In this document: positions 11,301 through 46,200 of the stretch, piece after piece
Numbering within the stretch: position 1 is the first letter of the stretch
Layout of the letters: every line of letters starts with the position of its first letter
DNA from: Ministeria vibrans ATCC 50519
Lineage: Eukaryota > Protista > Filasterea
DNA: 55,335 bases
Assembly: GCA_943704425.1 (NCBI GenBank)
Contig: CALSCP010001769.1
Coordinates: 1-55,335 of the forward strand
Reading direction: 5' to 3'
Program-made: the position numbers and the translations under genes
Notes under the pieces: generated by a model
Seen by the model: the letters and a program-made list of their open reading frames with translations, nothing else
What the model was told of the DNA's origin: nothing
Databases searched by the model: none

Positions 11301-14300
11301 CTGCGACCGCCGTAGAGAGCCGCTGATCCCGCCACGGTCACGTTGCTCGTCTGTTGTGTCTGCAAGTGCACAGCACACGCCGAACCGTTGAGAGCAAAGG
11401 TGCTGTCGAGCGTCGGGTTGATAAGATCAATAAGAGCACAACGGCTGAGTGTCGCACGTGCACTGCCGTAAATGACACGCGTCGGTGTCACGGCCACCGT
11501 GCCGCCCGCTCCCAATGTCGCCTGGTACGACGAAAGCCACAGCTGAAAGGTCACAAGATCCGAAGCAGGCACCTTGATGGGCACAGTTGCATTGATCGAC
11601 TGGAACACAAGCGGACCCGGTTCGGGACCGGACGCACTAATGGAGGCCGGCAGCGCGTCGGCCGGTATGCGAGTCGAACTCGCGGGGTCGGTAGGACCCT
11701 TATTGCCGTATGCCGACAAAACGAGCCCCTGAGGTGTCTGCTGGGCGCGCAGGACATAGCCAGAGGAAGACGCAGAGTAGAGGGTGGCTGGGCTCGCAGA
11801 GAGATGACGTAATTTTCCAAGTTCAAAACAACCCTGGCGATTGGCAGGCGCATCAACCACGGTCGCCGGCCACGTTTGGTGGTAGACGGTCGCGTGGATT
11901 TTAATGTCGACAATCTTCCAGCAGTACTTGTGCCAGGGCAACGGAATGCACGCCTCAATGCCAAGCTCAAACATACACGTGAGAATCAGTCGCTTGTCAA
12001 GCGTCTCGAAAAATTGCCCCGACTTGACCAGGCTCCACCAGATTTGCGAAAAGTAAATGAGGCCGTTTTGATTGAGGTCGGGCCAGCCGAGCGAGAGGGT
12101 CGCGGTAAGGGAGACGGAGGAAAAACCATCAAAGATATAGACGCCCACCGAAACTCCGCCGCCAAGGGTCACCGAGCCACTCAGTACCCACACTTTGGCG
12201 TGCGTGACTGGATCAATGGTAGGCAACGCCAGGCCCGAGATAAGATCGCCGAGATCATGCGAGTGAAATGTGTTAAAAAGCGCACTAGCCGGCAGAATAA
12301 CCTGCCGCAAGTTGATGGTGGCACTCGCTCCAAAAGCAATAAGAATGTCCACCTGCGGAAAGCCCCACACCTCGATGGGAAAGGCAATGCCCGCCGACAG
12401 AACCAGTCTGGGCACATTGAGAGCGATCACCGCCTCGTCACGACGCAAAAAGAAATTCACGAGGGTGCGCGGGATGTCATGGAAGATGGGAAAGGAGAGA
12501 CCCCAAGTGCCGCGTGTGCTGGCACCCACGTACTTCCACGTCTCGTTAATGGCATGCTGCTGGTCCGTCGGGAGCTGCGGTCCGCTCTTGAAGTCCGGTG
12601 GTGTGTTCCAATTGAATGGCAGCTGCGTGCCAATAAAGTCGGGGGCGGGATCGATTTGACGGAAGTCAATGGAGAAGTTGGCGTTGGCAGGTACGCGACC
12701 GGCACAACCGGCGACCGGTTTGGAAGGATAGGCAATGTGTTCGAGCATCTTTTCAACTTGAATAATGTCCGACATGAACTGAATGGCCTCGTTGACTCCC
12801 TCAAAGGTGCACTTGGGACAGTAGTGCTTGATGATGTGCTCGATGACTTGCAGCAGATTCATGCGCTGAAAGAAGATGTACTCGGCAATGGGCACGTTTC
12901 GCAGGAGAAGTCCGTCAGGTCCAATAAACTCGGCGAGCGGATCCAGAATGGGCTTGACGGCCTTGAGCACTTGACGAATCATACGCAGCACGATCGTACC
13001 GGTGCACAGAGACACGTCAGTCATGTTGATGTCTGGTGTGAAATCAAAGGTGGCCAGGTCAAACTTGGCTCCGAGCGACAAACCCACGTAGTAGTGGGGC
13101 ATGGCCAGGAGGTCGTTGACGCCAAAGATGCCAACGGGGCCCAGCTCGAGCGAGCCCTGCAGCGACACATCGATGGCCGCGCTCCCGTGCATCTTGCTAG
13201 CGGGCGGCGTGGGTGGATCCATGATATCAAGTAATGACGTGTAAACACGAGAAGAAGGAGGAGGAGAAGGAAGGAACGGCGGAGATGCCACGACGACGAC
13301 GACGGAGAAGCCACCTTTCACATGACCCGTAGCAATGACTTCGGCACCCAACGGACCAACATGGCCGCTCAACGTGCACGGCTGCTCGTCGTCGTAGCTG
13401 CGTCGCTGGCTAGGCACGTCATGGATGTCGAGGGCCACGTTGGCACTGACGACGGTAGAGTCAAGGGGGAAGCGGAAGAGCAGACCGTCCTTCTTGGACC
13501 ACACAATCTCAAAGTTGAGTTCCCAGTCAACGCTCAGCGTCTCCTTGCATCGACTGTCGAGAGTGAGCGAGGCGAGACCGTGCGAGCCAAGGGCAAAACC
13601 CAAACTGGCAAGGGTCCGGCCGTCTGCCTTGCCAAGGTGCGCAGGCCACACGTACTCCTTGACATCAACGCCGGTCGTGGGCACTTGCAGGGGCTCCACC
13701 TTGTATGGCAAAATGTCGTTGAGGACTTGCGTGAAGAGGAAGACTGCCTCGAGCTCGATAAGTTCCGCATTCTGGTGAATTGTGTTGTTGCGCTCGATGG
13801 TGAGGGTCATGTTGGCAAGACGACGCTGGAACTCCATCATGCGACTAGGCGTGATCATGTCGTGAAGACGCTCGATAAGGAGGTACTGCGCGGCCGTCTC
13901 GATGAGAGGCACAACGAGGTTCTCAAGAGCCCCGTCCGTCCCAAAGAAGTTACCGTCAAGCGCGAGAACAGCGCCTTCAAACTGCTGGATGACGCGGAAG
14001 GCATCTTGGGCATACTCAAAGAGCGACGATTGTTCGAGTGCCGCCTCAAGGAGATCCTCGAGTGGTTGTGCGCTGTTCTTGTAGCGACAGTCGACATAGT
14101 CAATGGCGGGCACGCAGCCGCGTAGGAACTGGTCAACGTGTTGAATGGTGAGATCAAAGACACAGCGAGTGTCGAGCAAATTAATGGTGGCGCCAAGAAA
14201 GGCGGAGCCACTCACGCTCATGTCAGAGGGGCGCCCGTCACTTTCAAAGTGCACAATGGCCATCATGGGCACGGTGGGAGTGCCCAGGTAAGCATTGAGG

Positions 14301-17300
14301 CCGCCGAGTTCGACGCTAAGCGGCCCAAACCACGCTTGGACGGTGCCGTCAAGAGAGAAATCAAGCGACGCCGACAGGTTGGTGCCGGGACCGAGCGAGA
14401 TGGCGAATCCATCGTGAGCAAAGTCGATGACGAGCTCGAGGTAAGCGGACACCTCGGTCTGCAGCACAATGCCCGTGTTCGTGCCCACGCCAATGGGAAT
14501 CTTTGTCGCGGTGGAACCCAGCAGGGTGGACGTGTCAAAGGCAAACGAGTCGCTGTAGTCGTAGTGCCGATCAAGCACACGAATATCAATGGCGAGCTGC
14601 GTGCCCTCGACGGTACGACTGTGGCATACGCTGGAGTTGAAGATCGCCTCGGCAGCCGCACAGAACATCTCCATGGTGAGGGGCTCGGTGGAGTTGCCCT
14701 GTTGGCAAATGGACACGGCCAAGTGACGCAAAAAGGAGGCGACGCGCTGTTCAAAGATGCTCGCAACGCTCTGGTGATGCACAAAGGGCAGTGAGGTGCC
14801 GCCACCCTTGGACTGAGCGATGCGCTCGATGGCGTCAATGGCCAGGTTGGTTGCGTCGCACATGGCTGAACCGTTGACCGCCATAAGCTGTTCGATGGTA
14901 TCGACGACATCTGAGTGGCCGTGAAAGTGCGGGTAGAAGTGGAGGCCTTGGGCGGTCGCATTGAATTCGCCTTCATTGGCAATGTTTGGCCAGTGACCTT
15001 CCATAACAAACGAGCCACCAAACTCGTACAGGTCAGCGGGCGGCAACAGCGGCAGAGAAACATCAACTTCGATGTGACTCAGCGTAAAGTTAGCGTCGAG
15101 GTCAAGGTCCACCTCAAAGGTCGGGAAGAACTTGCGGATGTCGCTGGCGGACGAGAAGAATTCGTGAACGGTGACGTTGGGCGAGGCGAGTGCAAGCGAG
15201 AAAGAGCCTGAAGCGCGCGCACCCACAAAGACACTGGACGCTTTCACAATGCCCAGGTGTCCCGAGGCTTCGCCAATGGACGCCTCGGCGCTCGCGCCAA
15301 ACTGCAGTTGGGCATCGCCCACGAGCATAAAGGTGGTGGCATGATGATCGCTGGCGTTGCCCAGCGCCGCCACGGACGAATTTCCGATAGAGAGCGCCAA
15401 GGGCACGAGGAGGTCGCCCTGGTACAGGGTTGTCGTGGTGTTCAACACAAGCTCCTCGTAGCGCAGAATAAGACGACCGGCGTGACGCTGGGGATTGATG
15501 GTGAAAAGCATGGGCGCCATACACACGGCGGGCAGCTGAGCACGGAGTGCCTCTTTGAGAGCGTCTACCAAGTTGAGGCCCGGCTTGAGCACAATGGGCA
15601 AGTTTAAGCACTCGTCGACGGGCACAGAAGCACGCGTGATATTCGAGCGACGGTCGAGTTTCAACGAAAAGATAAAAGTGTTGTTGAGCGGCTCGACAAG
15701 CACACTGGAGACGTTGCGTGGCACCGGCAGACCGGAGGCGCTCGTGGATACGGAGGCGCTCGGGCCCTGAGGCATCGCGTTGAAAAGTTGTGCAAGGCGC
15801 AGCTGGCCGTGATAGTGGAAAGCAACGTGTGCCTCAGCGTCGACGAGGTTGAACTGAGCGCGCTCGCCGAGCGCGCTGAACGATTCGACGACAGGCTGGC
15901 CACCGTGCACCTCGGCGTGGTCCACGTGAAAGGCAAATTCGACAGCGGGTAGGTGAGTGGGAAAGAAAGCGCGGTAGGTGGCAGGCACGGCGGCAGACAC
16001 CGAGTCGGTTGCGTACAGTTTGAGGTGGGGCAAGACGAAGGGCGCAGCGTGCGGAAACATGTGGTGGAGAGCCCACTGGATGTCGGCCCAGGTGGCGGCG
16101 AGAGCCACTGGCTTTTGAGCCCAGCTAGCGCTGAGGGTCAAGTTTGACGACGGTGGTTGTGTGGCGATGGTGGCGGCAGTGACAATGCCTGGTGTGGCTG
16201 GTCGCAGTTCGATGCGTCCGCAGTCGGGTGTGACTGGATCGTTGAGGAGCGCCACCACACGAAGGTAGGTGCCAACGCGGCTGCACGCGGGGTCGGCAAG
16301 AGCCGTCTGTAGGTGTGCCGCAACCATCTCGAGATTGTTGAGGGAGGAGGAAAGCGCAAGGCTACAGTTGAACTTGACGCCATTGACTGTGCCGGCAATG
16401 GAGCGGAGAGATGGAGCAAGGGAGGCGCAAGCGACAGGTGACCGCACGACGGCCGTCTGTGCCTCAAAAGGAAAGGTGAGCAGACGTGTGAGACGCGCGA
16501 CAGTCGCTTCAATGTTGGTGATGGCACCGATGCTCTCCTGCGTGATTTGCAATCCCAAATTGAGTTTGTCGTGCAGGAACTCGGAGATGCTTTGAAGAAC
16601 ATTGGAGAAGTCTTGGGCGACTTTGACGGGATCAACGCGGGCGGTCGATGACGATGTGAGCTCAAAGCGATTGGAAGGGTCCGCCTGCTGCTGCGTATTA
16701 AACAGCTCGGTAGAGAGGACGGCAGTGTCGGTAGCACCGTCGTGTGTGGTGACGTCGAGTTCGACTTCGAGACGCGACGTGATGGGCACCTCAATGGCGA
16801 GCGTCAGGTTGCTGCGGACAACAACGCCCGAAAGCATGCCAGCATGGAATGCAACGGCAAAGTCACGCGAATGGGCCACGCCGCCAATGGAGGGAGGTTG
16901 GAGAGAGCGCGAGCCGTCGTAGTTGACGCGGAAGGTAATGGAGGCGGAGAGCAGCAGGTTGGAGAGGAGACGGTCGAGGGCGGCGACGTAGCGCCAAGTG
17001 GTCGAGGTGCTGGTGGCGATAAAGGTGGTGAGACGCTGAAGGGCGATGGTCACGCTGACACCGGTGTTGTCGACCGAGACGACCGCGTGCGAGGCGGCCT
17101 TGAGGTGTGCTGTTGTACGACGGATGGTGTCAAGAAAGTGGGAGCGCAGGGCAAAGGCAGAGAGGGGAGCGGCCGCAGGAAGGGCCTTGACAGTGTTGGC
17201 GAGTGCAATGGCAATGTCGTTGAAGTGCAGACGGTGGCTCTCGTCCAGGGCACACAGATCGAGGTTGGTCGATTCGTAGGTGGCAAACTGATTGCAGAAG

Positions 17301-19559
17301 CGCACGAGGTCGCCACGGAGCAACGAGAGGCTGTTGGCGAGCATCAAAAGAGCAACGTCCACATTTTGAAGGAGAGCGTTGGATGGGCCGAGAGAAAATG
17401 GGCCAGGGGCGATGCCAGCGTTGACAAGGGCGGGCGTGGCAAAGGCCACAAGGGAGGTGGGAGCAAGGAGAGCGGGGTGAGAGCTGTTGAAGTGGACGGT
17501 AAAGTTTGCGGCAGAGGCCATAGTGGATGGTGTGGCATCGAGGGCGTAAGCGTAAAGGGTGGCACCAGCAAAAGAGGTGGGCATGCTCGGGGTGACGTGC
17601 CACCGGGCGTCGAAGAGAGGCACCAGACTGATGTTGGAGACAACCAGGACGGCGGTGAGGGAGCCGTTGAATTGGGCCGAGACGGGCTGAGAGGCGGTGG
17701 TGAGAGTGGGCATGGTGAGGTTGCGTGCAGTGGAGGGGAAGGCGGAGTGGACTGCGGCGGCGAGTTGCGCCAAGGCACTGTTGGCGAGGGAAACAGGGGC
17801 GGCTGTGGCACGAGACGGGGTGAAGGCCGAGAGAGAGACGTCAACAACCAGTTGGTCCAAGTGAGGCACGAGGGAAAGTTTGAAGGACGACTGCTGGGTG
17901 TCGATGAAGGTGAGCAGGTTGACGAAGGAAGGGCGTGTGGTAGTGAGGTCGTAGGCGGTGGTGAGGGAGGCAGCGGAGGCGGGGGAGAGGAGGGTCGCCA
18001 GAGCACTGTTGAGGTCGGGTTGAGACGTGGTCAGGGTGGTGTAGAGAGCCTGAAAGAGATTACTCAGGGGTTTCGTGAAGGAGGCCGAGGCGGACGCGAC
18101 CACAGTGTCTTGGATGAGCACGCCGCCGTAGCCACTGGCAAAGAGGTCGCGGTTGACGAGTGTGTGAGTGGCGCCCGTGTAGCCTGTGAGACGACCACGG
18201 CCAACGGGACGCACTGACTGAATCATGGGAGTCGTGGTGGCAAGGTGGGAGTCATTGAAGAAGAGCGCGGTGGGCCAGAGGGTGTCGTTGCCGACGACGA
18301 GCGAGTCGAAGGCGACGTTGACGAAGCGGTGGGTGTCGTTGGCACAGGCAAATAGGGCATAAGCACTGGTGGTGTGCACGCGCGGCAAGACGACGTCTGG
18401 GTGGAGAGCAGTCGCGAGGGAGAGGGTAGAGCGAAGAAAGTTGAGGCGCGGTTGAAGACACTCCCCTCCTTCCACTATTTGGGTGAGGGCCGTGAGGATG
18501 TCGGAGGGACAATTGTTTGAGCAGGTGTTGCGCGACTGAACAATGGCAACGTTGGGCACAATTTGATTTGTGGCACGACGCAGACCGACGGTGAGGGTGT
18601 TTGCGTTGGTACAAGGGGCCGGGGTGCGTGCGATGCCGCGAAAGGTCGTCGCGGCCAAGCCGGACGGGGTGAGAGCCGGTGAGTTTGCAAGCAGCGCCAA
18701 GTTGGTCGTGTTGATGGCAACAATGTCAAGGAGAGCAAGAGTACTGGGCGAGGTGGACGCGGCGCGCGGTCCAATTAGGACGTAGGCGGGAGCGCCGTCA
18801 AAGAGGCTGGCCAAGTCGGAGACGCGAATGTTGCTCGAGGTGTCGCCGCAGTCGCTGTTGAGAGTGCCCTGCCAAGGAAGCGACGCAAGCGCGTCGGCCA
18901 TGGTGGCAGGATACGCGCCCGGGGCACTTTTGGAGAGTTGGCCACAGATGGGCAAGTGAAGTGGTGGCGACGAGTCGACTTGGACGGTCAGAGACGCATT
19001 AAAGGAGACGGAGAGAGTTGAGGAGGAAACGGTCGCGTTTGCGCCGAGGGTCACGGTCGCCGTGCGTCGGATGGTGAAGGCATCGACAGAGTGCACGAGG
19101 ACCCCGGCGGGTGTGAGAATGCCGTCTGCGCTGAAGGAGTGTGTTGGAAATGGAACATTTTGCGAGTCGTAACGAAACGACGAGACGTCGGTGGACGAGG
19201 CGCAGGCCTGGTGGACCCACGCGAGAGAGGAGAGTGCGTTGGAGTGTAGGCCATCGATGGTGAGTGGGAGAGGGCCTGGCAAAGGGGGAGAGAGGAAAAA
19301 TGGACGAAATGAAATAAATCAGATGACACTCTCTTAGCGACTGTTGGGCTGTCTTTGTCACGCGGTATCAACTCTTGCAAGTGTACAGTGTACACTCGTC
19401 GTGCATGCGTCGTTGGTGTTGGTGTGGATTCGTTCTTGTTTTTGAGTTACCGGCAAATCCTGTGAGAGCGATGCATGGGGGCGCAATGGCTGTGGTGGTG
19501 GTGGAGAGAAGAGCGAGGAGTACGGCAAGGGTGGGGAGGACGCTGGTGGCAGGGGTCAT
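8309..19559 (-). CDS. Giant secreted beta-rich protein (~3,690 aa) with RTX-like Ca-binding turns and a C-terminal internal duplication
   Basis: Exon 1 (19559-19450) encodes signal peptide MTPATSVLPTLAVLLALLSTTTTA. A GT-AG intron (~19449-19276) joins in phase to an 11-kb exon (AG|PLPLT...). Motifs include GGDGNDIF, FDGDDTA, AGLGADTM, LAGDDAV, GTGSDTA, PDLNQNG. Confidence 0.85.
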
Positions 19560-25000: not shown

Positions 25001-25508
25001 TTTGTTTTTTGCTGGGTTGGCGGTGAGTCCGTCGCAGGGGGCGTCGTTGGCACTGCTGCTGCTTATTGCGCTGCTGCTGATGGTCGAGACGATGCTGTAT
25101 GAGCTGGTGGAGTATGAGGTGTACAAGCACCGCATTGCGTTGTTTGCGCTGCTCAATGTGTCGGTGCGCACTCGTCTGCTCTATGCACTGGTCATGTTTC
25201 TGCTGACTCTTGCAATGCTGGTCGCTCGCTATGCTGCCCCTGCGTCTGTGGCCGCACTGGTGTTCTGCATTCCACTGCTGCTAGTGTACTTTGTCAAGTT
25301 GCTCATTGAGATGGTCTTCTTTCTCATGTGTGCGTTCCCCCTGTGCAAGAAACCCATTGCGAACCGGCTGGTGCCCGACAACGCCCTCCCCAAGAACTAC
25401 TTTGCGACCCACGTCCTGTGCTACAGCGTGTCGGCGCCCCCCTTGTCCATTGCCGCCGATTCCGACGCTCGGCCCCTGCTCGATCCGGCCACCGTTTGCA
25501 CTGAATAG
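22084..25508 (+). CDS. Signal-peptide, large-ectodomain, multi-pass membrane protein (about 9-10 hydrophobic segments), two exons
   Basis: MRSLLFWLSLTVSLLTLPTPASS signal, ~640-aa ectodomain with a Cys-rich juxtamembrane part, then multiple TM-like segments. Intron ~24570-24757 links ORFs 22084..24573 and 24648..25508. Confidence 0.8.
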
Positions 25509-25769
25509 GTTTTTAGCACTATCTTTTTTTGTACAATACTTATTAATTTTTTTTATTATTATTACACCAAAAGTTATATCGCCCATTAACATGAATGTTG
25601 TCTAACTTGTCTTTATGATGAATTGATGAATGATGATGGTATTTTTGGGCCAAATGAGTTCGTTAATAAAAAATAAGGAGAATAAAATTAACGAGAGCGT
25701 CAGTGCCACCGTCGCACCATGGTCGCCCGCAGGCGCACTGGGCAGCGCAGNNNNNNNAAAAAAATGTAG

Positions 25770-25850
25770 TATTAGCACGACGCTCTAACCAGTAGGCTGA
25801 GCTAACCGGTCGAATGACCAGTAAGGGGATCGAACCCTTGACCTTCGCGT
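25770..25850 (-). tRNA. Circularly permuted tRNA-Ile(AAU), copy 1 (3' half 25850-25815, TTC linker, 5' half 25811-25770)
   Basis: Reverse complement is identical over 81 nt to 29535-29615. Anticodon AAT at 25773-25771. Followed by CTACA and an oligo-T terminator (A-run 25758-25764). Confidence 0.9.
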
Positions 25851-25947
25851 TTCAACTGAAATGCAAAATGTGTAAAAAGTGCTATAAAACTTCATTTTGG
25901 TTTTGACTTTTTGTTTTTGCACCATGTGTCTCAATATACTGACTATA
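25851..25947 (-). promoter_or_regulatory. Conserved upstream region of permuted tRNA copy 1 with TTTATA box (candidate external Pol III promoter)
   Basis: Aligns with 29439-29534. TTTTATAG on the minus strand at ~25889-25882. Confidence 0.55.
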
Positions 25948-26696
25948 TTCCATTTATATACTATCACAGAACATTCAGAAAAACAATCAATACCTCTTCC
26001 TTGTTCATTATGCAGCTCCATTTTGACACTCAACTGACACTAATCTCATATAAAAAAAACTATTCCAGACATGTCTCTAATAACTCTAATAACTCTATTG
26101 AGTATAAGACCCTGCCTAGACCCTACTTATTTGCGCGACTTCTGACCACTTTGCTCGAAATTGCACTATATTCTTGAAACGAAGAAACTTTCTTCAATCG
26201 GCTTCTCCCGCAATTGCATCACCATGTCTCCTTACGTACTAAATGCGCAGGATCCATTAATATTATTCCAGTATTCTATTACTTGATACTTCTTGTGGTA
26301 ATGAAGTTAACCATTTCTTTCCATCAACAGATTGATGTCTAAAAAGACAAAAAAAAAAGTGAAAGTCAGAAGAAAATGAAAAATTTGAATATTTTAATAC
26401 AATAATACAATAATACAAATATGTCTCATGGGTCATGTGTGTGTCAGTACTCAGTGGGTCTATACTCGGTGAGCTTCTTTCGGGATATTCTCGTCTAGAA
26501 GTCTGCGGCGGAAGTATTGTGCCTTTGTTTTGTCTATTGTCTTGTTTTGACATTGCGTACACCTCTCGATTCTCTGTTACAAATGTATTTTTCTTAATAC
26601 GAAATAATACAAAGAGTACATTTTAACACATATATACACACTTTGCTTTGCTGGCTGATTGGCCGCAAAGGTTACAATAAAAACGGCACAGAAGAA

Positions 26697-28949
26697 TTAA
26701 AACTTCAGCTTGCGGCGCGATGGAACAGGCGTCATGGGCACCGAGCTACGTTGCATGTGAACTCGACGCAGCTGATGCAAAGTCGGCGTCACGGGCGTCA
26801 TAACCACACTGTTGCGGTGTCGAGCCGCAGTCGCAGCTGCATTGCGACGCCGGCGGCGACGTCCAAGAAGGCTCTTTCCAAGTGACCAGCATGACACAAC
26901 CAGGGACCAGAGAAGCATGCACACGACAAGGACAATTGTTCCCGCCAATCCGTATGTGTTGTGGTCACGATTCAACGTCAGCGCCCATCGCCACAGCCTC
27001 AAGTCGTGCGCACAGCAGCGAAAGGCTGCGTCATGCGCACTGGACACGTAGCCAGTGTGCATGAGCAGATCGTGAGGTTCCACGCACACGTTCATCCAAC
27101 GGTCACGCACAGAGAGTGCACCGGCAGTCTGAAAGTAGCTATAAACGTGCGCTTCGCAAGAGTACCCGTCAACAGCACCAAGTGCAGCCACACCCGTAGA
27201 TAGGATCCCATCGCACACCAAACCTGTACCACCACAGTGGGCCCACGCAAGAGCACGAACAGCAACAAGCGTAAACTTTGCACCATATCCAAAGAGCAGG
27301 ACACACACCCCCGCTGAGAGAATCATGGCAAAGAGCAGCATCACAGCCATGTACTCTCGAGTCGATCCACCAAAGAAGCGACGCACAACTGCATGAAGAC
27401 CAGGCGGCGCAATGGCGTGAACAACTTTGTTGACGCCCAACAAGGCAATGGAGACGAGATTGCCCGGTCGAAGAGCGTCCGGCAACGCCTTGAGGGTCTT
27501 TTCCACAATCAATGTAAAAAGGGCCTATCAACGTACAAGAGCGACAGAGAGAGTCAAGAGATGAAAATAGTATGCATACGTACCTTGAAGGGAGCGGCAA
27601 AGTGATGAATGAGGCGGGTCCAAACATTGGTAAAGGCAAGGAGGACGGGTGAGACGAGGGCGGAGAGGGTGGAGAAGAGGGGTTGCCAGGCGTAATCGTA
27701 GAGGAAGGAGAGAAAGAGAGAGGAGTAGGCAATGAGGGGGTCGACGAAAAGGCGGAAAAGGCTGAGGAGAGGAGTGAAGAGGAAGTGGAGGGGAGCAAAG
27801 AGGAGAGCCAAGGCGTCATAAAGAGCGCGTGTGTAGGGAGCAAGTGCGTGGAGTGCGTTGAGAAGGGGAATAGGAACGGTGAAAAGGGCGCTGAGAAGGG
27901 ACATGAGAGGTGCAAAGGAGTGTAAAATGACGCGAAGGGCCGCGCTGAATTCTAAAAAATATGAGACGTAGACACAAAGCGAAAAAAAAAAAAAAAAAAA
28001 ATGAGAGAGTGAAATCGAGAGAGCGCGGAATAATTAAAATAGACAGGTCGCGTACCGGATCGAAAAATTTCCATAAGAAGGACGAGGAGGACGGAGCAGA
28101 GGGAACGGAAAATTTGATTGGCCAAGAGGGCGCGAATCTGAGCGCGATAGGCACGGATGCGGTCGGACCAAGAGAGGGAGGAAGGTGGACGTGTAGCGGC
28201 AGCATCGGTATAAGGCGAATGGAGGCCAGGGGTATCCGGAAGAGGAGAAGGAGGAGGCGGTAGATTCGGGAGGAGGGCAGGAGAGCTGGCACGAGTGCCA
28301 TTGAGACGACGACCATGGCCAGTGACGGCAGCAGCAGCAGCAGTAGCAGCAGCAGCGGTGGCGGCGGCGTCTCGATCTTTGAGCTGTTGTAGGCGCGACT
28401 TGGGAGGCTGAATGGGTCGCAGTGGGGAAGGAGAGTGAGCATGGTTGCCACGAGAGTCAGGAGAGGAGAGAGAGAGTTGGGAGGTTTGGCGGGAAAAGGA
28501 GAGGCGTCTCGGAGGGAGGAGGTCGCTGTGCGACGACTGGAAAGAACTTTGCTGCTGCGATTGGGTTTGCGTCGCAGGGTGTAAACCGGGAGTGACGTGC
28601 TCGTGTACATCGACGGAGGGAAGAGAGAGTTCGCGAGAGATGTCGACGGACCGTGCGAGCTGACGGGGCGAGAGACCGACGATGTTGGGGGAGGAGGTGG
28701 AGGCCATGAAGTCGGAGGTGGACTGGGCGTTGCGGAGGAGGCGGACAAGGCGCAGGTCGTCGGCGTTGACGGCCCAGTGGAGCGGCAGGTTTCCGTCAAC
28801 GGGGGACGCGACGTTGGCTTGCGCGCCTGCGTCGAGCAGAGACCGCGCGACGTCGGGTTGGCGCAGCGCACACGCGTGGTGGAGTGCAGTCATCCCCATG
28901 GGGTCGGGGCTGTTGAGTTCGCTGCGAGCGAGAGAGAGAGAGAGAGAGA

Positions 28950-28987
<38 letters not shown>

Positions 28988-29136
28988 CAGAGAGAGAGGC
29001 GACACCTTTTGAGATGGGCCACTTGGCGCCGAATGACACGCAAGGGAGAGCCGGACGCGACGAGAGACGCCAGAGTCGCGCTTGAACCAGTGGTGGATTG
29101 AATAAGAGGGCGCGGGGTGCGCTGGCCAGAGGCCAT
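26697..29136 (-). CDS. Ankyrin-repeat protein with Ser/Pro-rich linker and C-terminal multi-pass membrane region (4 exons)
   Basis: GMTALHHAC and DGNLPLHWAV ankyrin motifs. GT-AG splicing joins ORFs 27952..29142, 27554..27904 and 26697..27512 in frame (EIFRS-E-FSAALRVILHSFAPLMSLL; AAPFK|ALFTLIVEKT). Confidence 0.78.
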
Positions 29137-29438
29137 TTGCATTAGAGAGAAGGCTTCGTTCCTTCTCTGTTTTTGAGTAGTTGATCAAAGAAAAATTCTG
29201 ATTAAATTTGTATTTTTTCAAAGTTCAAACTTCAAAGCCATTCAAACTGCAAAAGGGACATTAAATTTTGCCACAAATCATTATTATATTATGATTATTA
29301 TTTGAAGCAGAATCACGCCAGGGTGGTGAAGAAAGAACTCAAAGAAGGCAAAGAAAAGTAGCACAGCGATGCAAAAGAATCGCTTTCTTGAGTGATATTT
29401 GAGCGTAAATAAATGAGTATTGGGGAGTACGTGAGCAG

Positions 29439-29534
29439 TATGGTCGGTATATGGAGACATGTGGTGAAAAAGCAAAATTCAAAACCAAAATGAAGGTTTA
29501 TAGCACTTTTTTGAGATTTTGCATTTCAGTTGAA
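29439..29534 (+). promoter_or_regulatory. Conserved upstream region of permuted tRNA copy 2 with TTTATA box at 29497-29502
   Basis: Homologous to 25851-25947 reverse complement. The box is 33-38 nt upstream of A38. The last 19 nt before the tRNA are identical in both copies. Confidence 0.55.
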
Positions 29535-29615
29535 ACGCGAAGGTCAAGGGTTCGATCCCCTTACTGGTCATTCGACCGGTTAGCTCAGCCTACTGGTTAG
29601 AGCGTCGTGCTAATA
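29535..29615 (+). tRNA. Circularly permuted tRNA-Ile(AAU), copy 2 (3' half 29535-29570, TTC linker 29571-29573, 5' half 29574-29615)
   Basis: 3' half: A CGCGA AGGTC AAGGG TTCGATC CCCTT ACTGGTC A. 5' half: GACCGGT TA GCTC AGCCTACTGGTTA GAGC G TCGTG CT AAT A. Swapping the halves gives a full cloverleaf with acceptor GACCGGT/ACTGGTC, D stem GCTC/GAGC, anticodon stem TCGTG/CGCGA and T stem AAGGG/CCCTT, closely matching eukaryotic tRNA-Ile(AAU). Confidence 0.92.
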
Positions 29616-29620
29616 CTACA

Positions 29621-29629
29621 TTTTTTTTT
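29621..29629 (+). terminator. Pol III oligo-T terminator of the permuted tRNA
   Basis: T9 run after a 5-nt trailer (CTACA) following A37. The same arrangement occurs in copy 1. Confidence 0.8.
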
Positions 29630-29993
29630 CTTTTTTTTTGCTTTTACTCGTTGCATGTGGTAGAACATGCTAACGACCCATGACGTTTTTTTTTTTCTTT
29701 TCTGCAGTTTAATAATAATAATAATAATTCGTCGTAATTAAAACGGTCTGGTTGTGTCTTCGTATGACGACAGTATCCTTGTAATAACTTTATTCTTCTC
29801 TTATTTTTTTTTAGTATTTCATTTCAAGTATATCGGTCGCCTTTACTTGGAGCTACTATTATAGGCTCCATTGTATTACTTCTTGCTTGAGTAATTTTTC
29901 ACTTTATCTCCCTTGCTGCGGTGATTACTGCCACACACATGCATTACGACTGTGCTGGCACCGCAAGTATATTATTGGAATTGATTATTAATT

Positions 29994-30605
29994 TCATTCG
30001 CAATGTTCTGTGTTGTCCACTAGAGTCGAATTCCAACTGAGCATCTGCTGGACCGAGACATCGCTCAGTTTGGAGCGACAATAAGTGTTGTCGTGAACGT
30101 GGTTCATGTAAGGCACACAGGGACGGTCCTGGAAGATGGTCGGAAGGGCCGGGTAGTGTGTGGAGTAAGGAGGAGACTGATAGTGCAGCGCGGTCAACTG
30201 AGAGGAAGACAAGAAGATAGATGTATATCCATTAGATGTGAAGGGACAAGCACAAATCAAACCTAGTGAGTGTACCTCTTGGCCAAACATGCCAGTGACA
30301 TTCTGGCAGTCGTCCTTCTGCCAGGTGAGTCCGCGATCATCAACATGCACAGCAGTGCCACAGTCGCTGAAGTAGTTGTCGGAGACCGAGTGACGTCGTC
30401 CACCACCAATGAACACTCCAACATGACAGTTGATAAACCTGACAGGGTGGAGAGAAAGAGAGAAAGAGAGAAAGAGGGAGAGAGAAAGAGAGAAAGAGAG
30501 AGAGAGAAAAGAGAAAGAGAGAAAGAGAGAAAGAGAAAGAGAGAAAGAGAGAAAGAGGGAGAGAGAAAGAGAGAGAGAAAAAAAGAGAGAGAAAAAAAGA
30601 GAAAA

Positions 30606-30642
<37 letters not shown>

Positions 30643-31521
30643 GAGAAAGAGAGAGAAACAAAGAGAGAGAAACAAAGTGATAGAGAGAGAAGGGAGAAAG
30701 AAACAAAGTGTTAGAGAGAGAGGAGGGAGAAAGAAACAAAGTGATAGAGAGAGAAGGGAGAAAGAAACAAAGTGATAGAGAGAGTCGACCATTAAGTTTA
30801 TAATTATAATATGTTCACGAAAGTGCACACAACCACTGTGTGTGTGTTACCGGTTGTGGGAGACATTGTGTTGGCTGAGCTGGTCGTCAAAGTAGATGGC
30901 TTGCACGGAGGGAGAGCCCAGAAAGGTCTTCTCGGTGTTGCGCACATCCTCAAACGTGTTGTTGCTATAACAGTGTGCACAGTGTCAAAGTGAGCACAGA
31001 GAAAACACTCAATTTGTGCAGTCATCGTTTAGACCAAGAAAAAAAATAGTCAAAACTCTATTCCCTCTCACTCTCAGCATCTCTTCTCTCCTTTCATATG
31101 CTCATTGAAGCACCCATTGGACATTGAAGGAAATTTACACACATGCACTCACCCACTCACTCACTCACACACACACACAGCTCTCCATCGTACAAAATCA
31201 GGCTTCCCCGTCGTGCCCACGAGCGCCCACTGTACCATGCACCAGAATCAGTCACTTCAAAGCACAAGTTCTTAAAATGGTTCTGCGAGAAAATGTGATC
31301 GTTTCCGCCACTTTCAAGAAGGAAAAAAAACAGTTGCAAAAAGAATCAATTAGACCCAAATCATCATGACGTATTTTCTTGTGGTTACCCAGTGATTCCG
31401 GTGTGTGGACCGTTGAAAATGTTGTTCATTGAATACGTATTACCCACTCCGGAAAATCTAATCCCGAAAAAAAAATTATTAGTTAATTATGTCTTATTAA
31501 TTATAATAATAATAATAACTA

Positions 31522-31553
<32 letters not shown>

Positions 31554-33755
31554 GTTATTCTACTCAATAATAATATAATAACGATAGCAACAACAACAGC
31601 AACAACAACAACAGCAACCATGATAAATAATAATAAGTCGATACCCAATTCCTGGTTGATAGGTTCGTTTCCAGCGAGCAAAATTGACAACAGAGTTGCC
31701 ATGAACGAGATTAAGAGCCTTGACAAGGGTCTTGGAGTCACCACCACCCACGTCAATGGCGGCACAGCCGGTATTGTCGGCTTGGTTGCCAAGAACCTGA
31801 AAAGGGAGGGAGAGAGTGTGAGTGACAGTAAGTGAGTGAGAGTGACTGAGATTGCAGGGAGTGCGAAATGAAGACAGTGACCAAGTGAATTGCAATGGGG
31901 TGGGGAACAAAGACAGACAAAGAGTGTGGAAGACTGAAGCTGAGCGACAGTAAACTGAGACTGAATAAGACAAATGCAATGAGTAAAAATACAGGCTGAG
32001 TGAGTGTGAATGAGTGACAACGAATAACAGTGCGTGTGGTAATAAGCAAAAGCGAGAGAGAAAGCGAGAGAGAGAGAGAGGGAGGGAGGGAGGGAGAGAG
32101 AGAGAAGCAAAAGTGATAGAGAGAAAAAGAAACAAAGTGATAGAGAGAGAGAAAAGTACAAAGTGATAGAGAGAGAAGAGAGAAAAGTACAAAGTGATAG
32201 AGAGAGAAACAAAGTGATCAAGAGAGAGAAAGAAAAAAATCTAACAAAAAAGAGAGAGACAGAGACAGAGACAACACGAATAGAACGTGATACTGCACAC
32301 CAAAGCAAATTACCTGATTGTGATCGCCATGCAAATTCACACTGCCCTGTCCCTGATTGGACAACACACACTCCTCGACAGTCACATAACTACAGTCTGT
32401 CAGCCCATGCACTCCCCACCCTTGTGCGAACATCATCTGAATCGAGCTCAGTGTCACATAGCTCACGTCACTCAGTGTCACAATGGCCTTTTCCCGTGAC
32501 ACATATGCCTGAGCACTTGCGGGTACGTTGGGTGGTGGCATAAAGTAGAGCAATCCCTTGTCGCGTGAAATGTAGTATTCCGGTGCAACGTCAAGTTCAG
32601 ACAGAATGTTCACTCCGTAGTAACTAAGAGTGTGTGTTTGTGTGAGAGAAAGAACGACAGAAAGAAAGTTTCAGATAGAGTCAGAAAAAATCACGCACAC
32701 ACGTCAAAAGTCAAGAAAATGCCACACATTTTGTCACAAGTCAAATACGTAAGAGAGAATCGCAGACAACCTGATGCTTTTTTTTTCATACCGAGCGTTA
32801 TCGGCAAAGCCATAAACAGGAGGGGTAGACGCATTCACAGTGAGTGAGTGCGTCTGCGGGTCAATTTTGGCCACTTTAACATAGTTGTCGGCCCATCCGT
32901 AGTAAAAGTAGCCGTGCAGCCACACGTCCGGCTCCGTGCTCCATTGCGACACACGGTCGCCGGAGTAGGTGAACCCAGACGGGTTTGCCTTGACAGTGTT
33001 GAGCCATTGTGGAAGCTAAAACACAAAGCGATCGTCTCATATGAAAACAAAAAAAACAAAAAATGACACAAAACAATCATATTTCATGTTGAAAAACACA
33101 AAGATTAATATAATTAACACTCACCTGTGTCGCAGGGTCAATGTTAGGGTAGCGAGCAAGCACCGCAGGCACATCGTCAAAAAACAACTCCATTTTGCTG
33201 TTGGCACAGTCGCCTGTGGACATACAACAGAATGAGAGAGAGAGATAGAAACAACACCCCCCAACTCAACTCCCAGTCAGACCCTTTTTCCCTCTTACCC
33301 AACTGCCCGTTCAGCAGCTCGCCCATTTGCGCGCGCGTCACGCCCAGCGCGGTAAGATTGGCCACCATGATGTCGCCGGCGTACGTGGACCACGCGTGGC
33401 GCGGCACCTGCGGACCACCGAGGAATCGCACAGCCTCGTTCTGGTACGCCGCATAAACAACGCGCCCACTCTCGCTGACGCCCGAGTCAGCCGCCCCCGA
33501 CAGCGCCAAAATGGGCTGCCCGGGGACGGGAGAGATGTAGTCGCCCGCGCGGATCTGCACGTGGACGCCTTCGGGGCGTTTGGACGGCGCAATGGCGCGC
33601 ACAGCATCGCGCGCTCGTCCCACCGTCGCAAACGGCGCACTGAGCGTCCCTGCGTTCGTGTCCTTGCCGTTCGTGCCGTCCACAAACAACTCAATCGGCG
33701 CCCCGTGCACTGCAGTCAGTGCGCAAAGCAGAGAAAAGAGAAGAAGAGCATTCAT
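29994..33755 (-). CDS. Secreted right-handed parallel beta-helix (pectin-lyase-like fold) protein, intron-rich
   Basis: Signal MNALLLFSLLCALTAVHG, then FVDGTNGKDTNAGTLSAPFATVGRARDAVRA, VQIRAGDY, AAYQNEAVRFLGG, LFFDDVPAVLARYPN, VWLHGYFYYGWAD, NILSELDVAPEYYI, DSGAWYSGRSW, AIYFDD, FIGGGRRHSVSDNYF. Confidence 0.88.
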
Positions 33756-37253: not shown

Positions 37254-39097
37254 TTAAAAATCTACAAAGACTTGGGGAAACATGCCAGTGCGTCCGTCAA
37301 GCGCACCCTTGAGCCAATCCTCATTAACGCGATCAATAATGGTCACACTGGCTCCGACGTAGAGTGTCAGCTCACTCGCATCCTCTCCTTCAAAATCATG
37401 CACTGCCGTCGCAACACGCCCCACCAGGGGATCCGTGGCGGCAGCCGCAGTCGCAGCTGAATTTGCACTGCTCGCATTCATCGACTCATTTCCGTGCTTT
37501 TTGCGCGACAACTTGGCTCGCATTGCCTTGAGCCCGCGTCGCTTCTTGTGCTCCTCTCCATCCTCACCACCCCCACTTGCACCAACGCTTGACCCCCCTG
37601 TTGCTGATGCTGCTGCTGTTGATGCCGCCGCCGCTGCGTTCTCAGGGGTGCGCATGACGCGGGACGACTCAAGCACAGGCGCAGGGGCACCCGCAACAGT
37701 CGCAACGGGTGACCATGTCGACGTCGACGACAACACCTTCTTCTTCTGCTTCTCAATCATGTTCGAGCGACGCTGACTTGCCGCCACCATTGCCGGATTG
37801 ACCGCCCCACCTGCAGGTCCGCCCATTCGCCCCGTCGGCGGCACTTGCTCCATGTACACCCGTACCTGCAAAATCACTCCGCCCTGTCCAATGAATTCCG
37901 CGTTGAACCAGTGTGGGTCGTCCAGCGCTGTCTGCAAACGCACCAGGTCTCCCGCATTGCCAGGCACCGGTGGACCTCCAATCGATCCAGCAGGCGCCTG
38001 GGCGAGTACCGCCGACTGTGCAGCAGCAGGAGTGGGAGGTGCCTGTGCCGGTGGTGGAACGTACGATGATGGTGGCGGTGCTGCCGCCGCTACTGTTGGG
38101 GGTTTTCCAGGTGTTGGCGTGGATGGATGAGAGTGCTGTACTGTGGAAACTTCGCCCCAGGCGGTAGGCGTCGAGGACATGTCCCAATCGTCAACGGCGG
38201 CAGCGGGCGCAGCAGCAGCGGCCCCGGCCGGCGCGGGAGTGCCATTCCAGGAGGACACTGCCGCCGGCTGCGCATTCCACGTCGACGTAGCCCGTGCGGC
38301 GGCAGGTGCAGGGGCAGGAGTAGCCCCAGACAGTGGTGGTGGTGCTGGTGCTCCTGCAGGCGTGGGCTTTGGTTTGGCGAGGGGCTTTGGTGCGGGTGCA
38401 GGCGCTGTTTCCGTTGGCGTGGGCGGCGCTGAGTCGTCTGGCAGCTCTTTCAGAATGAGTATGAATCCTTTGGAGAATCGCCCAAAGCGACCGCCGCATT
38501 CGCCCTCGTACCACGTTGAGTCAATGCGTCGAAGCAATCGAATTTGGTCGTTGGCCTGCGACGAGAGAGAGAGAAAGAGAAAGAGAAAGAAGAGAAAGAG
38601 AGTCAAAAAAAAAAGGAAAACAGAAAAGAAAAAAAAAAAAAAACCTCACTCACTCACTGACTTTTGCTCTCCTGACAACATTCTCACCTTAAACGACAAC
38701 TCGTCAGGATCAGCGGCATCAAAATCCATCAGGCCAACAGCGAGGCCTTCGGGTGGAGGTCCGGACGGCTTCGGCTTGGGCGTGGGGACCGGTTTGGGTT
38801 TGGGCTTGGGACGGGGAGCACTGGGCGGCGGAGCGGACGGCAGCATCGCCACAAAGGAGGAGGGGAAGAGGCCGCGCGCGCCCTGGAAGTCGCCTTCAGA
38901 CCATTCTTCGTCGAGGACCTCGACATTGTCTGTGGGTGAGTGAGTGAGTGAGTGAGTGAGTGAGTGTGTAAGAGAGAGAGTGTGTTGTGTCTGTGTGTGT
39001 GTGTGTGTGTGTGTGTACCAATGACATCTCCTACAGCAAAACATAATTCATCCGCACTCTCGCCATTAAAGGCAAACACTGCTCGAGCCGAAGGCAT
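37254..39097 (-). CDS. Multi-SH3 adaptor (3 clear + 1 degenerate SH3, Pro-rich linkers; SH3D19-like architecture), 3 exons
   Basis: ARAVFAFNGESADELCF..EEWSEG..GLFPSSFV; DFDAADPDELSFK|ANDQIRLL..TWYEG; AVHDFEGEDASELTL..EDWLKG..GMFPQVFV. Confidence 0.88.
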
Positions 39098-43257: not shown

Positions 43258-46200
43258 TTGAGTATGGAACGAGCAGGGAAGATGCAAAGAGTGGCCGTTG
43301 TGTTTGCGGTTGTGTTGGCCTGTCTGCCCACGACGCTCGCCTCCTGCGCCTCGTCGCCGTGCCTGGGCGGCGGCAGCTGCATTGATGGCACTGCTCTTGC
43401 TACGGCAACCACGACGGCTGTGGTTCGAGGCACTCAGGCCCTGCAGCTGCCCTTGCCCGCCGTTCTTTCGTCCGCCTCGTCGCTTCTTGTCAGCACCATT
43501 GGCGATTTCGGAACGGACAGTGAGTTTCTCACCCTCTCCGCCGGCAATTGGTCGCTGACTCTGCACGCGACCGTCAACGAGAACGATTGCTTGCACAAGA
43601 TTGACGATGTGCCTCTCAGTGCCGATGACCTGGCGCAGATTGTCGCGAACAACGGCACCATCACCGTGCTATTCTCTAGCGGCGTTGACGACCTGTGCAA
43701 CAACCCGTTTCTCACCGTGGCACTGCTCTCCAGCTCGGGCTACATGTGTGCATGTCCATTTGGCCTGACTGGAAGCATGTGCGAGACCGACATCGACGAG
43801 TGTGCGTCGTCGCCGTGTGCCAACTTGGCATCTTGCCTTGACGGCGTCGATGGCTTCCAGTGCAACTGTCTTCCGGGCTTCACCGGCGTGCTGTGCACGG
43901 ACGACATCAACGAGTGTCTGTCGTCGCCGTGCGGCACTGGCTTGCTGACGGGCGTTTGCAGCACCGACAACTACCACGAGAGTGTGCAACACACTGGTGT
44001 GGTGGGTTCCACGACTATTCCGTTTGTGTTTGACAACGTCCCGGTGTTCGGCAGCGGCTACCTCGTGGTGACGTCGGACGCCGACCTGGGCACAGCGATT
44101 GAGACGCTGACAGTCGAGGGGGCCAATGCGGCCGCTGGCTTCTCCATCCAGCTGTTTGACACGGCGGGTGGCGCCGACTGCACCAACCGCACGGAGACAG
44201 TGGTGCTGTCGGCGGCCACGCTTGCCTCGCTGCGCAATGCCAACGGCACGGTACAGCTCAACCTGGTGGTGCCGTCGACCGTGAGTGGCGGTATTTGTGG
44301 GCACGAGCCCGCGGCGTCGATCACCCTGGTGGCAGGACGCGATGCGTTTGAGTGCACATGTCTGCCCGGCTACAGTGGAGTGCTGTGCGACCAGATTGTG
44401 GGCGAGTGTGCGTCGATGCCGTGTCAGTCGGGCGGTACGTGCCTGCAGACGTTGACGTCGCAAGGACACGTGACACCCATCAGTTTTTCCGCTGGACCTC
44501 AGACGCTGCGCATTCCCAATGCGGCGCAGTTTGCTGGCGCGGGCGTGCAGCTGCTGGTCGAGGCGAACGCCGATCTGCAAACGGAGAATGAGTACCTGAC
44601 GCTGTCGGGTGGTAACAACTCAGTGTCGGTGCGAGTGTTTGAGGCAAACCGCGGATTGGACTGCGTACTGAAGTCGGAAGGCGTGCTGCTGACGGCAAGC
44701 CAGGTGGCGGCCATTACTGTGGACAACTCGCTGGTGTTGGTGGTGAGTGCGTCGAATCAAGTGGACGATTTTTGCACGGATTCGTTTGTGCGCATTGTGG
44801 CACTTTCACTGGGCAGCGCGGCGAACGGCACGTCGTGTGTGTGTCCGCCTGGCTACACCGGTGTGTTTTGTGAGGTGAACATTGACGATTGTGTGTCGTC
44901 GCCGTGCGTCAATGGTGCAACTTGCACCGATGGCGTTGCATCGTTCCAGTGTTCGTGTCTGGCGGGCTTTGGGGATGCGCAGTGTGAATTGGATGTGGAC
45001 GAGTGCGAATCGTCGCCGTGTGGCTCGTCGGCACTTGCATCGACGTGCAACACCGAGTCGTACAACACGAGCGTGTCGCATACAAACACGGTGGGCGGCA
45101 CGTCGACAGCGTACACGTTTGACTCGGTGCCGGCCGGCAGCGGCTACATTGTGGTGACGAGCAATGCGGACTTGGCGTCGGCACAAGCGGAGCTGGTGCT
45201 CAGCGCAGGCATGTGGTCGTTGACGGTGTTCAACGAGTCGTATGCGAGCAACTGTGTCGAGCGATCGGTGCTGGTGCCGCTGACGCAGGCAGACTTTGCA
45301 GCGATGCAGCAGAACGGCGGAAGCGGCGCAGTGGTAATCACAGTGGTGCCGTCGGCGTATGTGGACGACGGTACGTGTGGCAGCGGCACGACGACCACCA
45401 TTCAGCTGGTGGGCGGTCGAAACACCTTTTCGTGTGCGTGCACTGCGGGCTTTACAGGCGTTCAGTGTGAGTCGGTGTTGGGCGCGTGTCAATCGGATCC
45501 GTGTTTAAACAGCGGCACATGTGTGCTGGGTGCGGCCGTGTCGTCGTCGCGCGTGGGACCGGTCTCGTCTGTGTCGGGACCCGTGACGGTGACGTTGGCG
45601 GGGGTGCCGAGTGGTGTTGATGGCGAACTGGTTGTGTCGAGCAACAGTGACCTTGGTAGCAGCAATGAGTTGCTGACGGTGTCCGGCGGCAACTTTTCGT
45701 CGGCGGTGTTCGACACGGGCAACGTGGGTGATTGCGGACTGCGCACGAGTACGGTAGCCATTAGTGCGGCACAGGTTGCTGGAGCAACGGTCAACGGTGT
45801 GCTAACACTGACGGTGTTGCCTGCGAATACTGTGGACGATTTTTGTGCCGAGTCGTACGTGGAAGTGTCGTTTTTGAGTGCCGACATGAACGCCTTTCTG
45901 TGTGTGTGCCCTGTGACAGCGTCGGGTGCAACGTGCGAGTTGGTGGATGCGTGTGCGTCGCAGCCGTGTTTCAACGGGGGCTCGTGTACCACGGGGCCGG
46001 GAGTGTATGCGTGTGCGTGTGCGGAGGGAACGACAGGCGACAATTGCGAGACGGACCTTGACGAGTGCGAGTCGAGTCCGTGTGCCAATAGTGGCACATG
46101 CGAAGATGCGCTTGGTGGATTTACGTGTCTGTGTGACTCGCTGTACTATGGCGCACTCTGTGACGAGTCGGCGTGCTTTTCGTCGCCGTGCATGAATGGC

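Follow-up and report, generated by a model that had tools for sequence, protein, structure and literature searches.

Do two tRNA halves that lie in reversed order in the DNA of Ministeria vibrans form a working gene, and is this arrangement an isolated case in the genome? M. vibrans is a filasterean, and filastereans are the sister group of the lineage that comprises animals and choanoflagellates. In a 55,335-nt stretch of its DNA, which was analysed as a whole and is referred to here as the window, a preliminary description made from the letters alone had read positions 29535-29629 as a circularly permuted nuclear tRNA-Ile(AAU) gene of an opisthokont- or holozoan-like host. This reading was supported by every test that we ran at the sequence level, and there is no RNA evidence.

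The host

The holozoan-like affinity that had been inferred for the host was borne out: it is M. vibrans (Filasterea, Holozoa), and the mitochondrial atp6 is 100% identical to the UniRef entry of this species. The mitochondrial contig (C1523) has 55,949 bp, 25% GC, TGA read as Trp, 25 tRNAs and an atp6 of 247 aa, and the published M. vibrans mtDNA has 55.9 kb and an atp6 of 247 aa (PMC7027106). The Nup107 encoded in the window is closest to vertebrate (fish) Nup107, with 37% identity; this match and a protein-atlas comparison pointed no further than to an opisthokont-like host, and the identification rests on atp6. Neither an LHC (chlorophyll a/b-binding) protein nor a RuBisCO large subunit was found in the genome. 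The window also holds two ORFs of about 3,650 aa in opposite orientation (8309-19282, minus strand; 43258-54177, plus strand) with internally repeated sub-ORF patterns, which are probably paralogous giant repeat proteins.

Anatomy of the tRNA-Ile(AAU) locus

The sequence at 29535-29629 reads exactly as had been described. On the plus strand, the 3' half of a tRNA-Ile (tRNA positions 38-73; 29535-29570) is followed by an intervening TTC (29571-29573), by the 5' half (tRNA positions 1-37; 29574-29615) and by CTACA and nine T residues. The 3' half runs from A38 through the 3' strand of the anticodon stem, a 5-nt variable loop and a T arm with the loop TTCGATC to the 3' strand of the acceptor stem and the discriminator A73. 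The 5' half contains the 5' strand of the acceptor stem, the D arm, the 5' strand of the anticodon stem and the loop CTAATA up to A37, with AAT at 34-36. Neither a 5' half upstream nor a 3' half downstream is present, as the preliminary description had also stated. A TATA-like promoter element, TTTATAGCACTTTT (29498-29511, plus strand), starts 37 nt before the first coding base and is identical in both copies of the gene (see below), and the same is true of the leader between them (29516-29534), which is predicted to be removed in maturation and is 100% identical in the two copies. Downstream, the trailer CTACA (29616-29620), which is also predicted to be removed and is identical in the other copy, precedes T9-C-T9 (29621-29639), a T stretch resembling a Pol III terminator. 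The longest T run within the gene body is TT, so the gene has no internal terminator-like run.

No tRNA was detected in the unswapped window by ARAGORN or by a scan with Rfam gathering thresholds, which agrees with the earlier expectation that standard tRNA scanners would miss the gene. When the halves were swapped, ARAGORN called a tRNA-Ile(aat) of 78 nt with a score of 102.0 and all four stems, and the claim that the four stems pair after swapping thus stands. The score is lower than the 115-121 of the sister permuted genes because of a D-loop of 13 nt, which exceeds the usual length in tRNA-Ile by about 4 nt. Three tRNA-Ala(AGC) genes (C434:20883-20964, C434:28977-29058 and C123:2351-2432) have about 9 extra D-loop bases; taken together, the extra bases in the Ala(AGC) and Ile genes suggest that long D-loops are tolerated or else that very short inserts are excised.

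We judged the locus by what defines a eukaryotic type II permuted gene. A 3' half precedes a 5' half on the same strand with a 3-nt spacer (the known range is 1-74 nt; PMC3978253), the cloverleaf is complete with a sense anticodon after swapping (the 13-nt D-loop being the exception), CCA is not encoded, with TTC directly after A73, and an upstream element (TTTATAG at -37) and a T stretch (T9 after CTACA) are present. Both the minimum free energy and the centroid fold of 29524-29624 gave the cloverleaf in permuted order (-30.2 kcal/mol, z = -2.1): the anticodon stem closes the RNA, and inside it lie the T arm, the acceptor hairpin over A+TTC and the D arm. At the termini, C32 can pair with the G at leader position -3 (29532), and the last two leader bases together with A38 then form a 3-nt bulge resembling a 3' splice site. 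A strict bulge-helix-bulge (hBHBh') motif is absent from the leader and trailer of the Ile gene, where the canonical register pairs only 32:-3, 34:-5 and +2:-7.

A second copy and the integrity of the assembly

By a genome-wide DNA search and alignment of the copies, we identified a second tRNA-Ile(AAU) gene in inverted orientation at 25770-25850 on the minus strand (copy 1; the gene at 29535 is copy 2). It consists of a 3' half (25815-25850), a linker (25812-25814) and a 5' half (25770-25811), with a TATA-like element at 25874-25887; its trailer CTACA with T7 (25758-25769), also on the minus strand, abuts an assembly gap of N (25751-25757). The two copies align over 161 nt and are identical across 112 nt (29516-29627), a segment that extends from the proximal leader through the gene and the trailer into the T run. 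All 7 mismatches fall in the 49 nt upstream of 29516, a pattern with a chance of about 2e-4 if mismatches were evenly spread. As far as can be judged by comparing the two sequences, the identity of the transcribed unit beside a diverged flank indicates selection or gene conversion acting on the unit. With exactly two copies in the genome, each a unit of at most 161 nt, the gene does not qualify as a tRNA-derived SINE or a dispersed repeat.

The genome is a draft assembly of 29.7 Mb in 2860 contigs, and this, together with the gap beside copy 1, would fit an artefact in which a tandem tRNA array was collapsed or mis-joined, an outcome that the preliminary description had named as a refutation. 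We aligned contigs from four public runs to positions 25300-30000. Contigs from separate DNA runs of 2011 and 2022 carry the Ile unit at a depth about twice that of the single-copy neighbours, and read-set contigs pass from the unit into unique flanks on both sides (e.g., 29652-30000, from 25840 and up to 29545). The unit is therefore present in independent read sets and mis-assembly can be excluded for all practical purposes; in addition, copy 2 has no gap and the permuted arrangement recurs at more than 15 unrelated loci. The assembled contigs of an RNA-like run did not cover the tRNA gene and, between the two copies, contained only a spliced ankyrin-repeat gene. A low-depth RNA-like contig (25850-26055) upstream of copy 1 ends exactly at 25850, the position of A38, beside the predicted leader|A38 cut; since a contig end does not mark the end of an RNA, we treat this as a curiosity only.

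Search for other sources of tRNA-Ile(AAU)

Eukaryotes normally need tRNA-Ile(AAU). The pattern TNAGAGC-N6-CTAATA, which represents the 3' strand of the D arm, six bases and CTAATA, had no occurrence in the 29.7 Mb outside the two permuted loci. Searches of the draft assembly with RF00005 (the best 63 of 508 candidates were scored) and with the covariance model R2 described below gave no further Ile(AAU) gene, so that a colinear Ile(AAU) gene, the presence of which the preliminary description had left to be checked, did not emerge within the limits of these searches. The only other nuclear Ile tRNA seen was an atypical Ile(GAU) in a non-canonical cluster on C425, which could read AUU/AUC if expressed. 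Within the limits of a draft assembly and of scoring the best candidates, the main Ile tRNA of eukaryotes has no source in this genome apart from the permuted genes.

Further permuted tRNA genes in the genome

A genome-wide search for permuted genes had also been proposed, and it yielded many. We used a pattern in which a B box is followed by an A box, which gave 15 matches versus 0-2 in the control; a relaxed form of this pattern was rejected as mostly noise, with the control as high as the signal. A MAFFT alignment of the permuted units misplaced the acceptor strands, and a covariance model from the single Ile gene was used instead, re-aligned, rebuilt as model R2 and run genome-wide. Together, the pattern and R2 revealed at least 11 further isoacceptors that are permuted at 37/38, among them Val(AAC) and Arg(ACG) with two copies each, Thr(UGU), Arg(CCG) (C335), Lys(UUU) (C437), Arg(UCU) (C1993), Gly(CCC), Gly(UCC), Cys(GCA) and Ser(UGA). 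Inserts of 26-51 nt, some of which hold T6 runs, interrupt the T stem or T loop in four of these genes, namely the T arm of Arg(CCG) and Lys(UUU) and the T loop of Arg(UCU) and of the second Arg(ACG) (C883, where the insert is large); such genes resemble the doubly disrupted genes of Cyanidioschyzon merolae.

After swapping, ARAGORN called 9 of 13 units as clean tRNAs, and the 4 units that it missed carry extra inserts. Eight 37/38 genes were called with scores of 115-121. One of the nine, on C2431 (223936-224015, minus strand), scored 103.2 and was called Trp(cca), which we judged to be a mis-call of the simple swap; the locus looks like a permuted Arg(UCG) that is split near 24/25, on the 3' side of the D stem, and has a 12-nt canonical intron at 37/38. 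Another type of junction was found in Lys(CUU), which is present as two inverted copies (C277; L009:~230-330, plus strand, and L010, inverted) and is split in the T loop (type IV-like). The order there is the T-stem 3' strand, the acceptor 3' strand, a 6-nt linker and then positions 1 to ~59, with an upstream AATAGCACTTTTT element as in other permuted genes and a T11 run. In an alignment of 15 permuted genes (13 from M. vibrans and 2 from metagenome contigs), 94.5% of the cells at paired positions could pair, compared with 59% when shuffled and 30-46% when slid, and changes on both sides were seen in 18 of 21 pairs; because the genes were aligned to the model, the counts are biased in favour of the structure.

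The colinear nuclear tRNA set found with the Rfam tRNA model is small, with about 14 ordinary eukaryotic anticodons in addition to odd tRNA arrays, and among the best 63 of 508 RF00005 candidates that were scored it lacks almost all isoacceptors that occur in permuted form. The dense atypical arrays (C585:35850-36750, C2083:6950-8250 and 37950-38750, C2093 and C425:28640-29160) include the Ile(GAU) gene as well as Phe(GAA) and Ser(GGA) genes in which CCA is encoded. In appearance, these arrays are closer to bacterial, phage or giant-virus tRNAs than to ordinary nuclear ones.

Shared promoter, terminator and splice-site features

Among the five permuted genes that were examined first, a TATA-N-CAC/T-TTT motif precedes the coding sequence by 37-43 nt in Ile, Arg(CCG), Lys(UUU) and Gly(CCC), whereas in Arg(ACG) there is a TATA-like box alone, at a distance of 56 nt. 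The same TATA-like element lies upstream of the colinear iMet, Ala(CGC) and Ala(AGC) genes. Runs of T7-T15 begin within 2-13 nt after all permuted genes except Cys(GCA), for which no T run was found in the 45 nt downstream. The TFIIIC B-block-binding domain (PF04182) had no match in the draft genome. Little weight is given to this negative result because the domain is short and the genome is a draft, and it is only weak support for TFIIIC-independent transcription.

A census of TATAKCACTTT gave a count of 144 versus 9 in the control, and among 59 downstream regions examined the only tRNA gene was the permuted Ser(UGA). Because the motif also occurs within a dispersed CT-rich repeat, the census was rejected as a count of Pol III genes, and the excess says nothing about promoters. 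This repeat, with CTCTATCACTTTGTTTCTTTCTC, occurs in the window at 30437-30785 and 32037-32277 and on many contigs, and it overlaps the tRNA upstream element in sequence and inflates motif counts.

The 3' half begins with A38 in every 37/38 gene except Val(AAC). Furthermore, the 32:-3 pair, which we take to be the anticodon-intron pair needed by eukaryotic splicing endonucleases at the 3' splice site, is possible in all 12 genes with a 37/38 junction (C:G in ten, U:A in Gly(CCC) and Val(AAC)). In Gly(CCC), the central 4-bp helix is perfect. Processing enzymes are also encoded in the genome, namely two tRNA_int_endo catalytic domains (C1244 and C1078) and a multi-exon RtcB (C2497).

Proposed maturation pathway and alternative explanations

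We consider it highly likely, without RNA evidence, that both loci are functional type II (37/38) circularly permuted nuclear tRNA-Ile(AAU) genes that are matured via a circular intermediate. The anatomy, the duplication pattern, the shared signals and the encoded enzymes come from the M. vibrans genome itself; the order of the maturation events is inferred from work in algae, where RT-PCR in C. merolae and green algae has demonstrated a circular-intermediate pathway for genes of this anatomy (PMC3978253). In the proposed pathway, Pol III would be positioned by the upstream TATA-like element and not by the inverted B-then-A boxes, and the predicted transcript would comprise the leader, the 3' half, TTC, the 5' half and the trailer, with a stop in T9. 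In the cloverleaf that this RNA is expected to adopt, the acceptor stem would be a hairpin and the anticodon stem would hold the ends together. Cuts by the tRNA splicing endonuclease could then be made at leader|A38, aided by the C32:G(-3) pair and the 3-nt bulge, and at A37|trailer, and RtcB would ligate A37 to A38 to give an 81-nt circle. The putative intron consists of the trailer and leader, which come from the two ends of one linear transcript; the ligation product would therefore be circular, in contrast to a conventionally spliced tRNA. The circle may be opened at G1 and A73 by RNase P and tRNase Z (or by trimming), with loss of TTC, after which CCA would be added and A34 is presumed to be converted to inosine. 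Several points count against this reading: the missing RNA evidence, the lack of a strict bulge-helix-bulge, the 13-nt D-loop, the ARAGORN score of 102 versus 115-121, the 3-nt intervening sequence, the Ile(GAU) gene on C425 and the scoring of only 63 of 508 candidates with RF00005.

In the accepted model of their origin, permuted genes arise by tandem duplication of a tRNA gene and subsequent loss of the outer halves, and the Ile loci could be the relic of such an event that was copied once and never matured to tRNA. The aberrant D-loop with its lower score, the leader and trailer without a strict bulge-helix-bulge and the absence of RNA evidence are compatible with a relic. However, the gene body is the same in both copies while the flank has diverged, every stem is intact, the promoter element, T run and 32:-3 pair are common to at least 11 other permuted isoacceptors, and the searches of the draft assembly gave no other gene for a tRNA that eukaryotes normally need; a non-functional relic is thus improbable. 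If the transcript is processed, it might still yield two half-molecules without any circular stage, and these would either function as a split (or nicked) tRNA or be ligated in trans. In favour of such a route, the 3-nt linker lies between the RNase P and tRNase Z sites, at which cleavage could occur first, and split tRNAs exist in Archaea. The route is very improbable, as circularisation comes first in every permuted system studied (PMC3978253) and the conserved splice-site-like 32:-3 pair and bulge at the termini indicate that an endonuclease and a ligase act on one molecule.

The locus could also encode a tRNA-like noncoding RNA that works in permuted order and is never made into tRNA, similar to the tRNA-mimic module of bacterial YrlA Y RNAs. 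The best sub-threshold Rfam match of the unswapped locus was indeed YrlA (RF02553; 24.3 bits, E = 0.01), in which a T arm, an acceptor-like hairpin and a D arm follow each other in the same order, and this shared order of the arms accounts for the weak likeness. The match covers model positions 23-86 only and is far below the gathering score of 69 that membership would take, the Ro-binding stem is absent, and the Ile locus has a full anticodon stem and a sense anticodon. Moreover, the permuted family spans many isoacceptors with matching identity elements, as would be expected of a tRNA set and not of a group of Y RNAs. A YrlA-like function is extremely improbable. We thus retain the reading of both loci as tRNA-Ile(AAU) genes matured via a circle.

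Significance

In the literature searched, which extends to a 2026 review, permuted tRNAs figure as an oddity found in one archaeon and a few algae, and they are explained there as an archaeal relic or are tied to tiny algal genomes. That review names only algae and Archaea as holders of permuted tRNAs, and nothing relevant on permuted tRNAs in connection with opisthokonts, Capsaspora or Ministeria was found in this literature. The preliminary description had reasoned that the novelty would vanish if the host fell in a lineage already known for permuted tRNAs; in the searched literature, they are confined to algae, a nucleomorph and Thermofilum. The permuted tRNA-Ile(AAU) gene is real, is present in two copies and is very probably functional, again with no RNA evidence at hand. 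It belongs to a known kind of gene (type II), and what is new is the lineage and the scale, cases from the host lineage being unreported in the literature searched.

The occurrence of a permuted set in a heterotrophic holozoan breaks the link to algae, and it speaks for several independent origins or for a distribution far wider than has so far been noticed. An independent origin of permutation in M. vibrans is an inference. On balance, we favour the view that a large part of its nuclear tRNA set is permuted or ectopically interrupted, driven by TATA-type elements and possibly read without TFIIIC B-box recognition, and that this condition arose genome-wide and independently outside the algae and Archaea, as the first case in Amorphea. 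The finding also implies that circularising substrates are probably within the reach of an animal-type splicing endonuclease and RtcB. Work on tRNA annotation and codon usage in Ministeria, and perhaps in other unicellular relatives of animals, is incomplete if standard scanners were relied upon. M. vibrans also offers a culturable organism near animals for studies of TATA-driven Pol III transcription and circular tRNA intermediates.

Comparison with known permuted tRNA systems

A 2014 review (PMC3978253) listed 34 permuted genes from C. merolae, four prasinophytes, a nucleomorph and Thermofilum, none of them for Ile, and a 2025 preprint added Auxenochlorella (PMC12633428). Intervening sequences in the 2014 table are 5-74 nt long in eukaryotes, with one of 1 nt in Thermofilum (PMC3978253), and the 3-nt intervening sequence of the M. 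vibrans Ile gene is thus shorter than any eukaryotic case listed there. M. vibrans also has more permuted isoacceptors than any single alga in that table.

The type II genes of C. merolae (Soma et al., 2007; PMC3978253) share with those of M. vibrans the leading 3' half, the 37/38 junction and the lack of an encoded CCA. In both organisms, a TATA-like element lies no more than 50 bp upstream of permuted and colinear genes and a T stretch follows (PMC3978253), permutation is accompanied in one genome by ectopic T-arm or D-arm inserts and by other junction types, and no TFIIIC B-block subunit was detected, although the negative result is weak for M. vibrans. Unlike C. merolae, M. vibrans is a non-photosynthetic holozoan, and its Ile(AAU) isoacceptor is outside the 2014 list. 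The intervening sequences of C. merolae are 7-74 nt long compared with 3 nt in the M. vibrans Ile gene, the termini of which have a eukaryote-style anticodon-intron pair and no strict bulge-helix-bulge, and for which there are no RNA data. In prasinophyte and trebouxiophyte algae and the Bigelowiella nucleomorph (Maruyama et al., 2010; PMC12633428), nearly all junctions are at 37/38, as in M. vibrans. In the green algae and the nucleomorph as well, standard scanners give an incomplete tRNA set, and Cys(GCA), Ser(UGA) and Arg(UCU) are permuted in common with M. vibrans; green algae belong to the Archaeplastida, whereas M. vibrans belongs to the Amorphea.

We also scanned metagenomes for an Ile(AAU) 5' half followed by a T run. 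Two further families of permuted Ile(AAU) genes were found in metagenome contigs (Ga0181573_10000336 and three others; PVBE011695219.1:~3721-3848), with 37/38 junctions and linkers of 34 and ~54 nt, and they differ from the M. vibrans gene in the acceptor stem and in linker length. The gene on PVBE011695219.1 adjoins a P5 ATPase with 44-49% identity to its counterparts in green plants and algae, and because one family lies beside such a green-plant-like ATPase, these genes are no evidence of conservation among relatives of Ministeria. Judged from these contigs alone, both families would fall within, or be compatible with, the known algal range and would have no bearing on Ministeria.

The archaeon Thermofilum pendens (Chan et al., 2011; PMC3218864) resembles M. 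vibrans in its very short intervening sequences (1-7 nt) and heavily disrupted tRNA genes; it differs in its 59/60 junctions, its encoded CCA, its archaeal promoters and its bulge-helix-bulge recognition (PMC3218864). The canonical eukaryotic intron at 37/38 has the same cut sites as those predicted for the M. vibrans genes, the same pair between position 32 and the third base before the 3' site and the same 3-nt bulge, and for both the same endonuclease and RtcB are expected, each of which is encoded in the M. vibrans genome.
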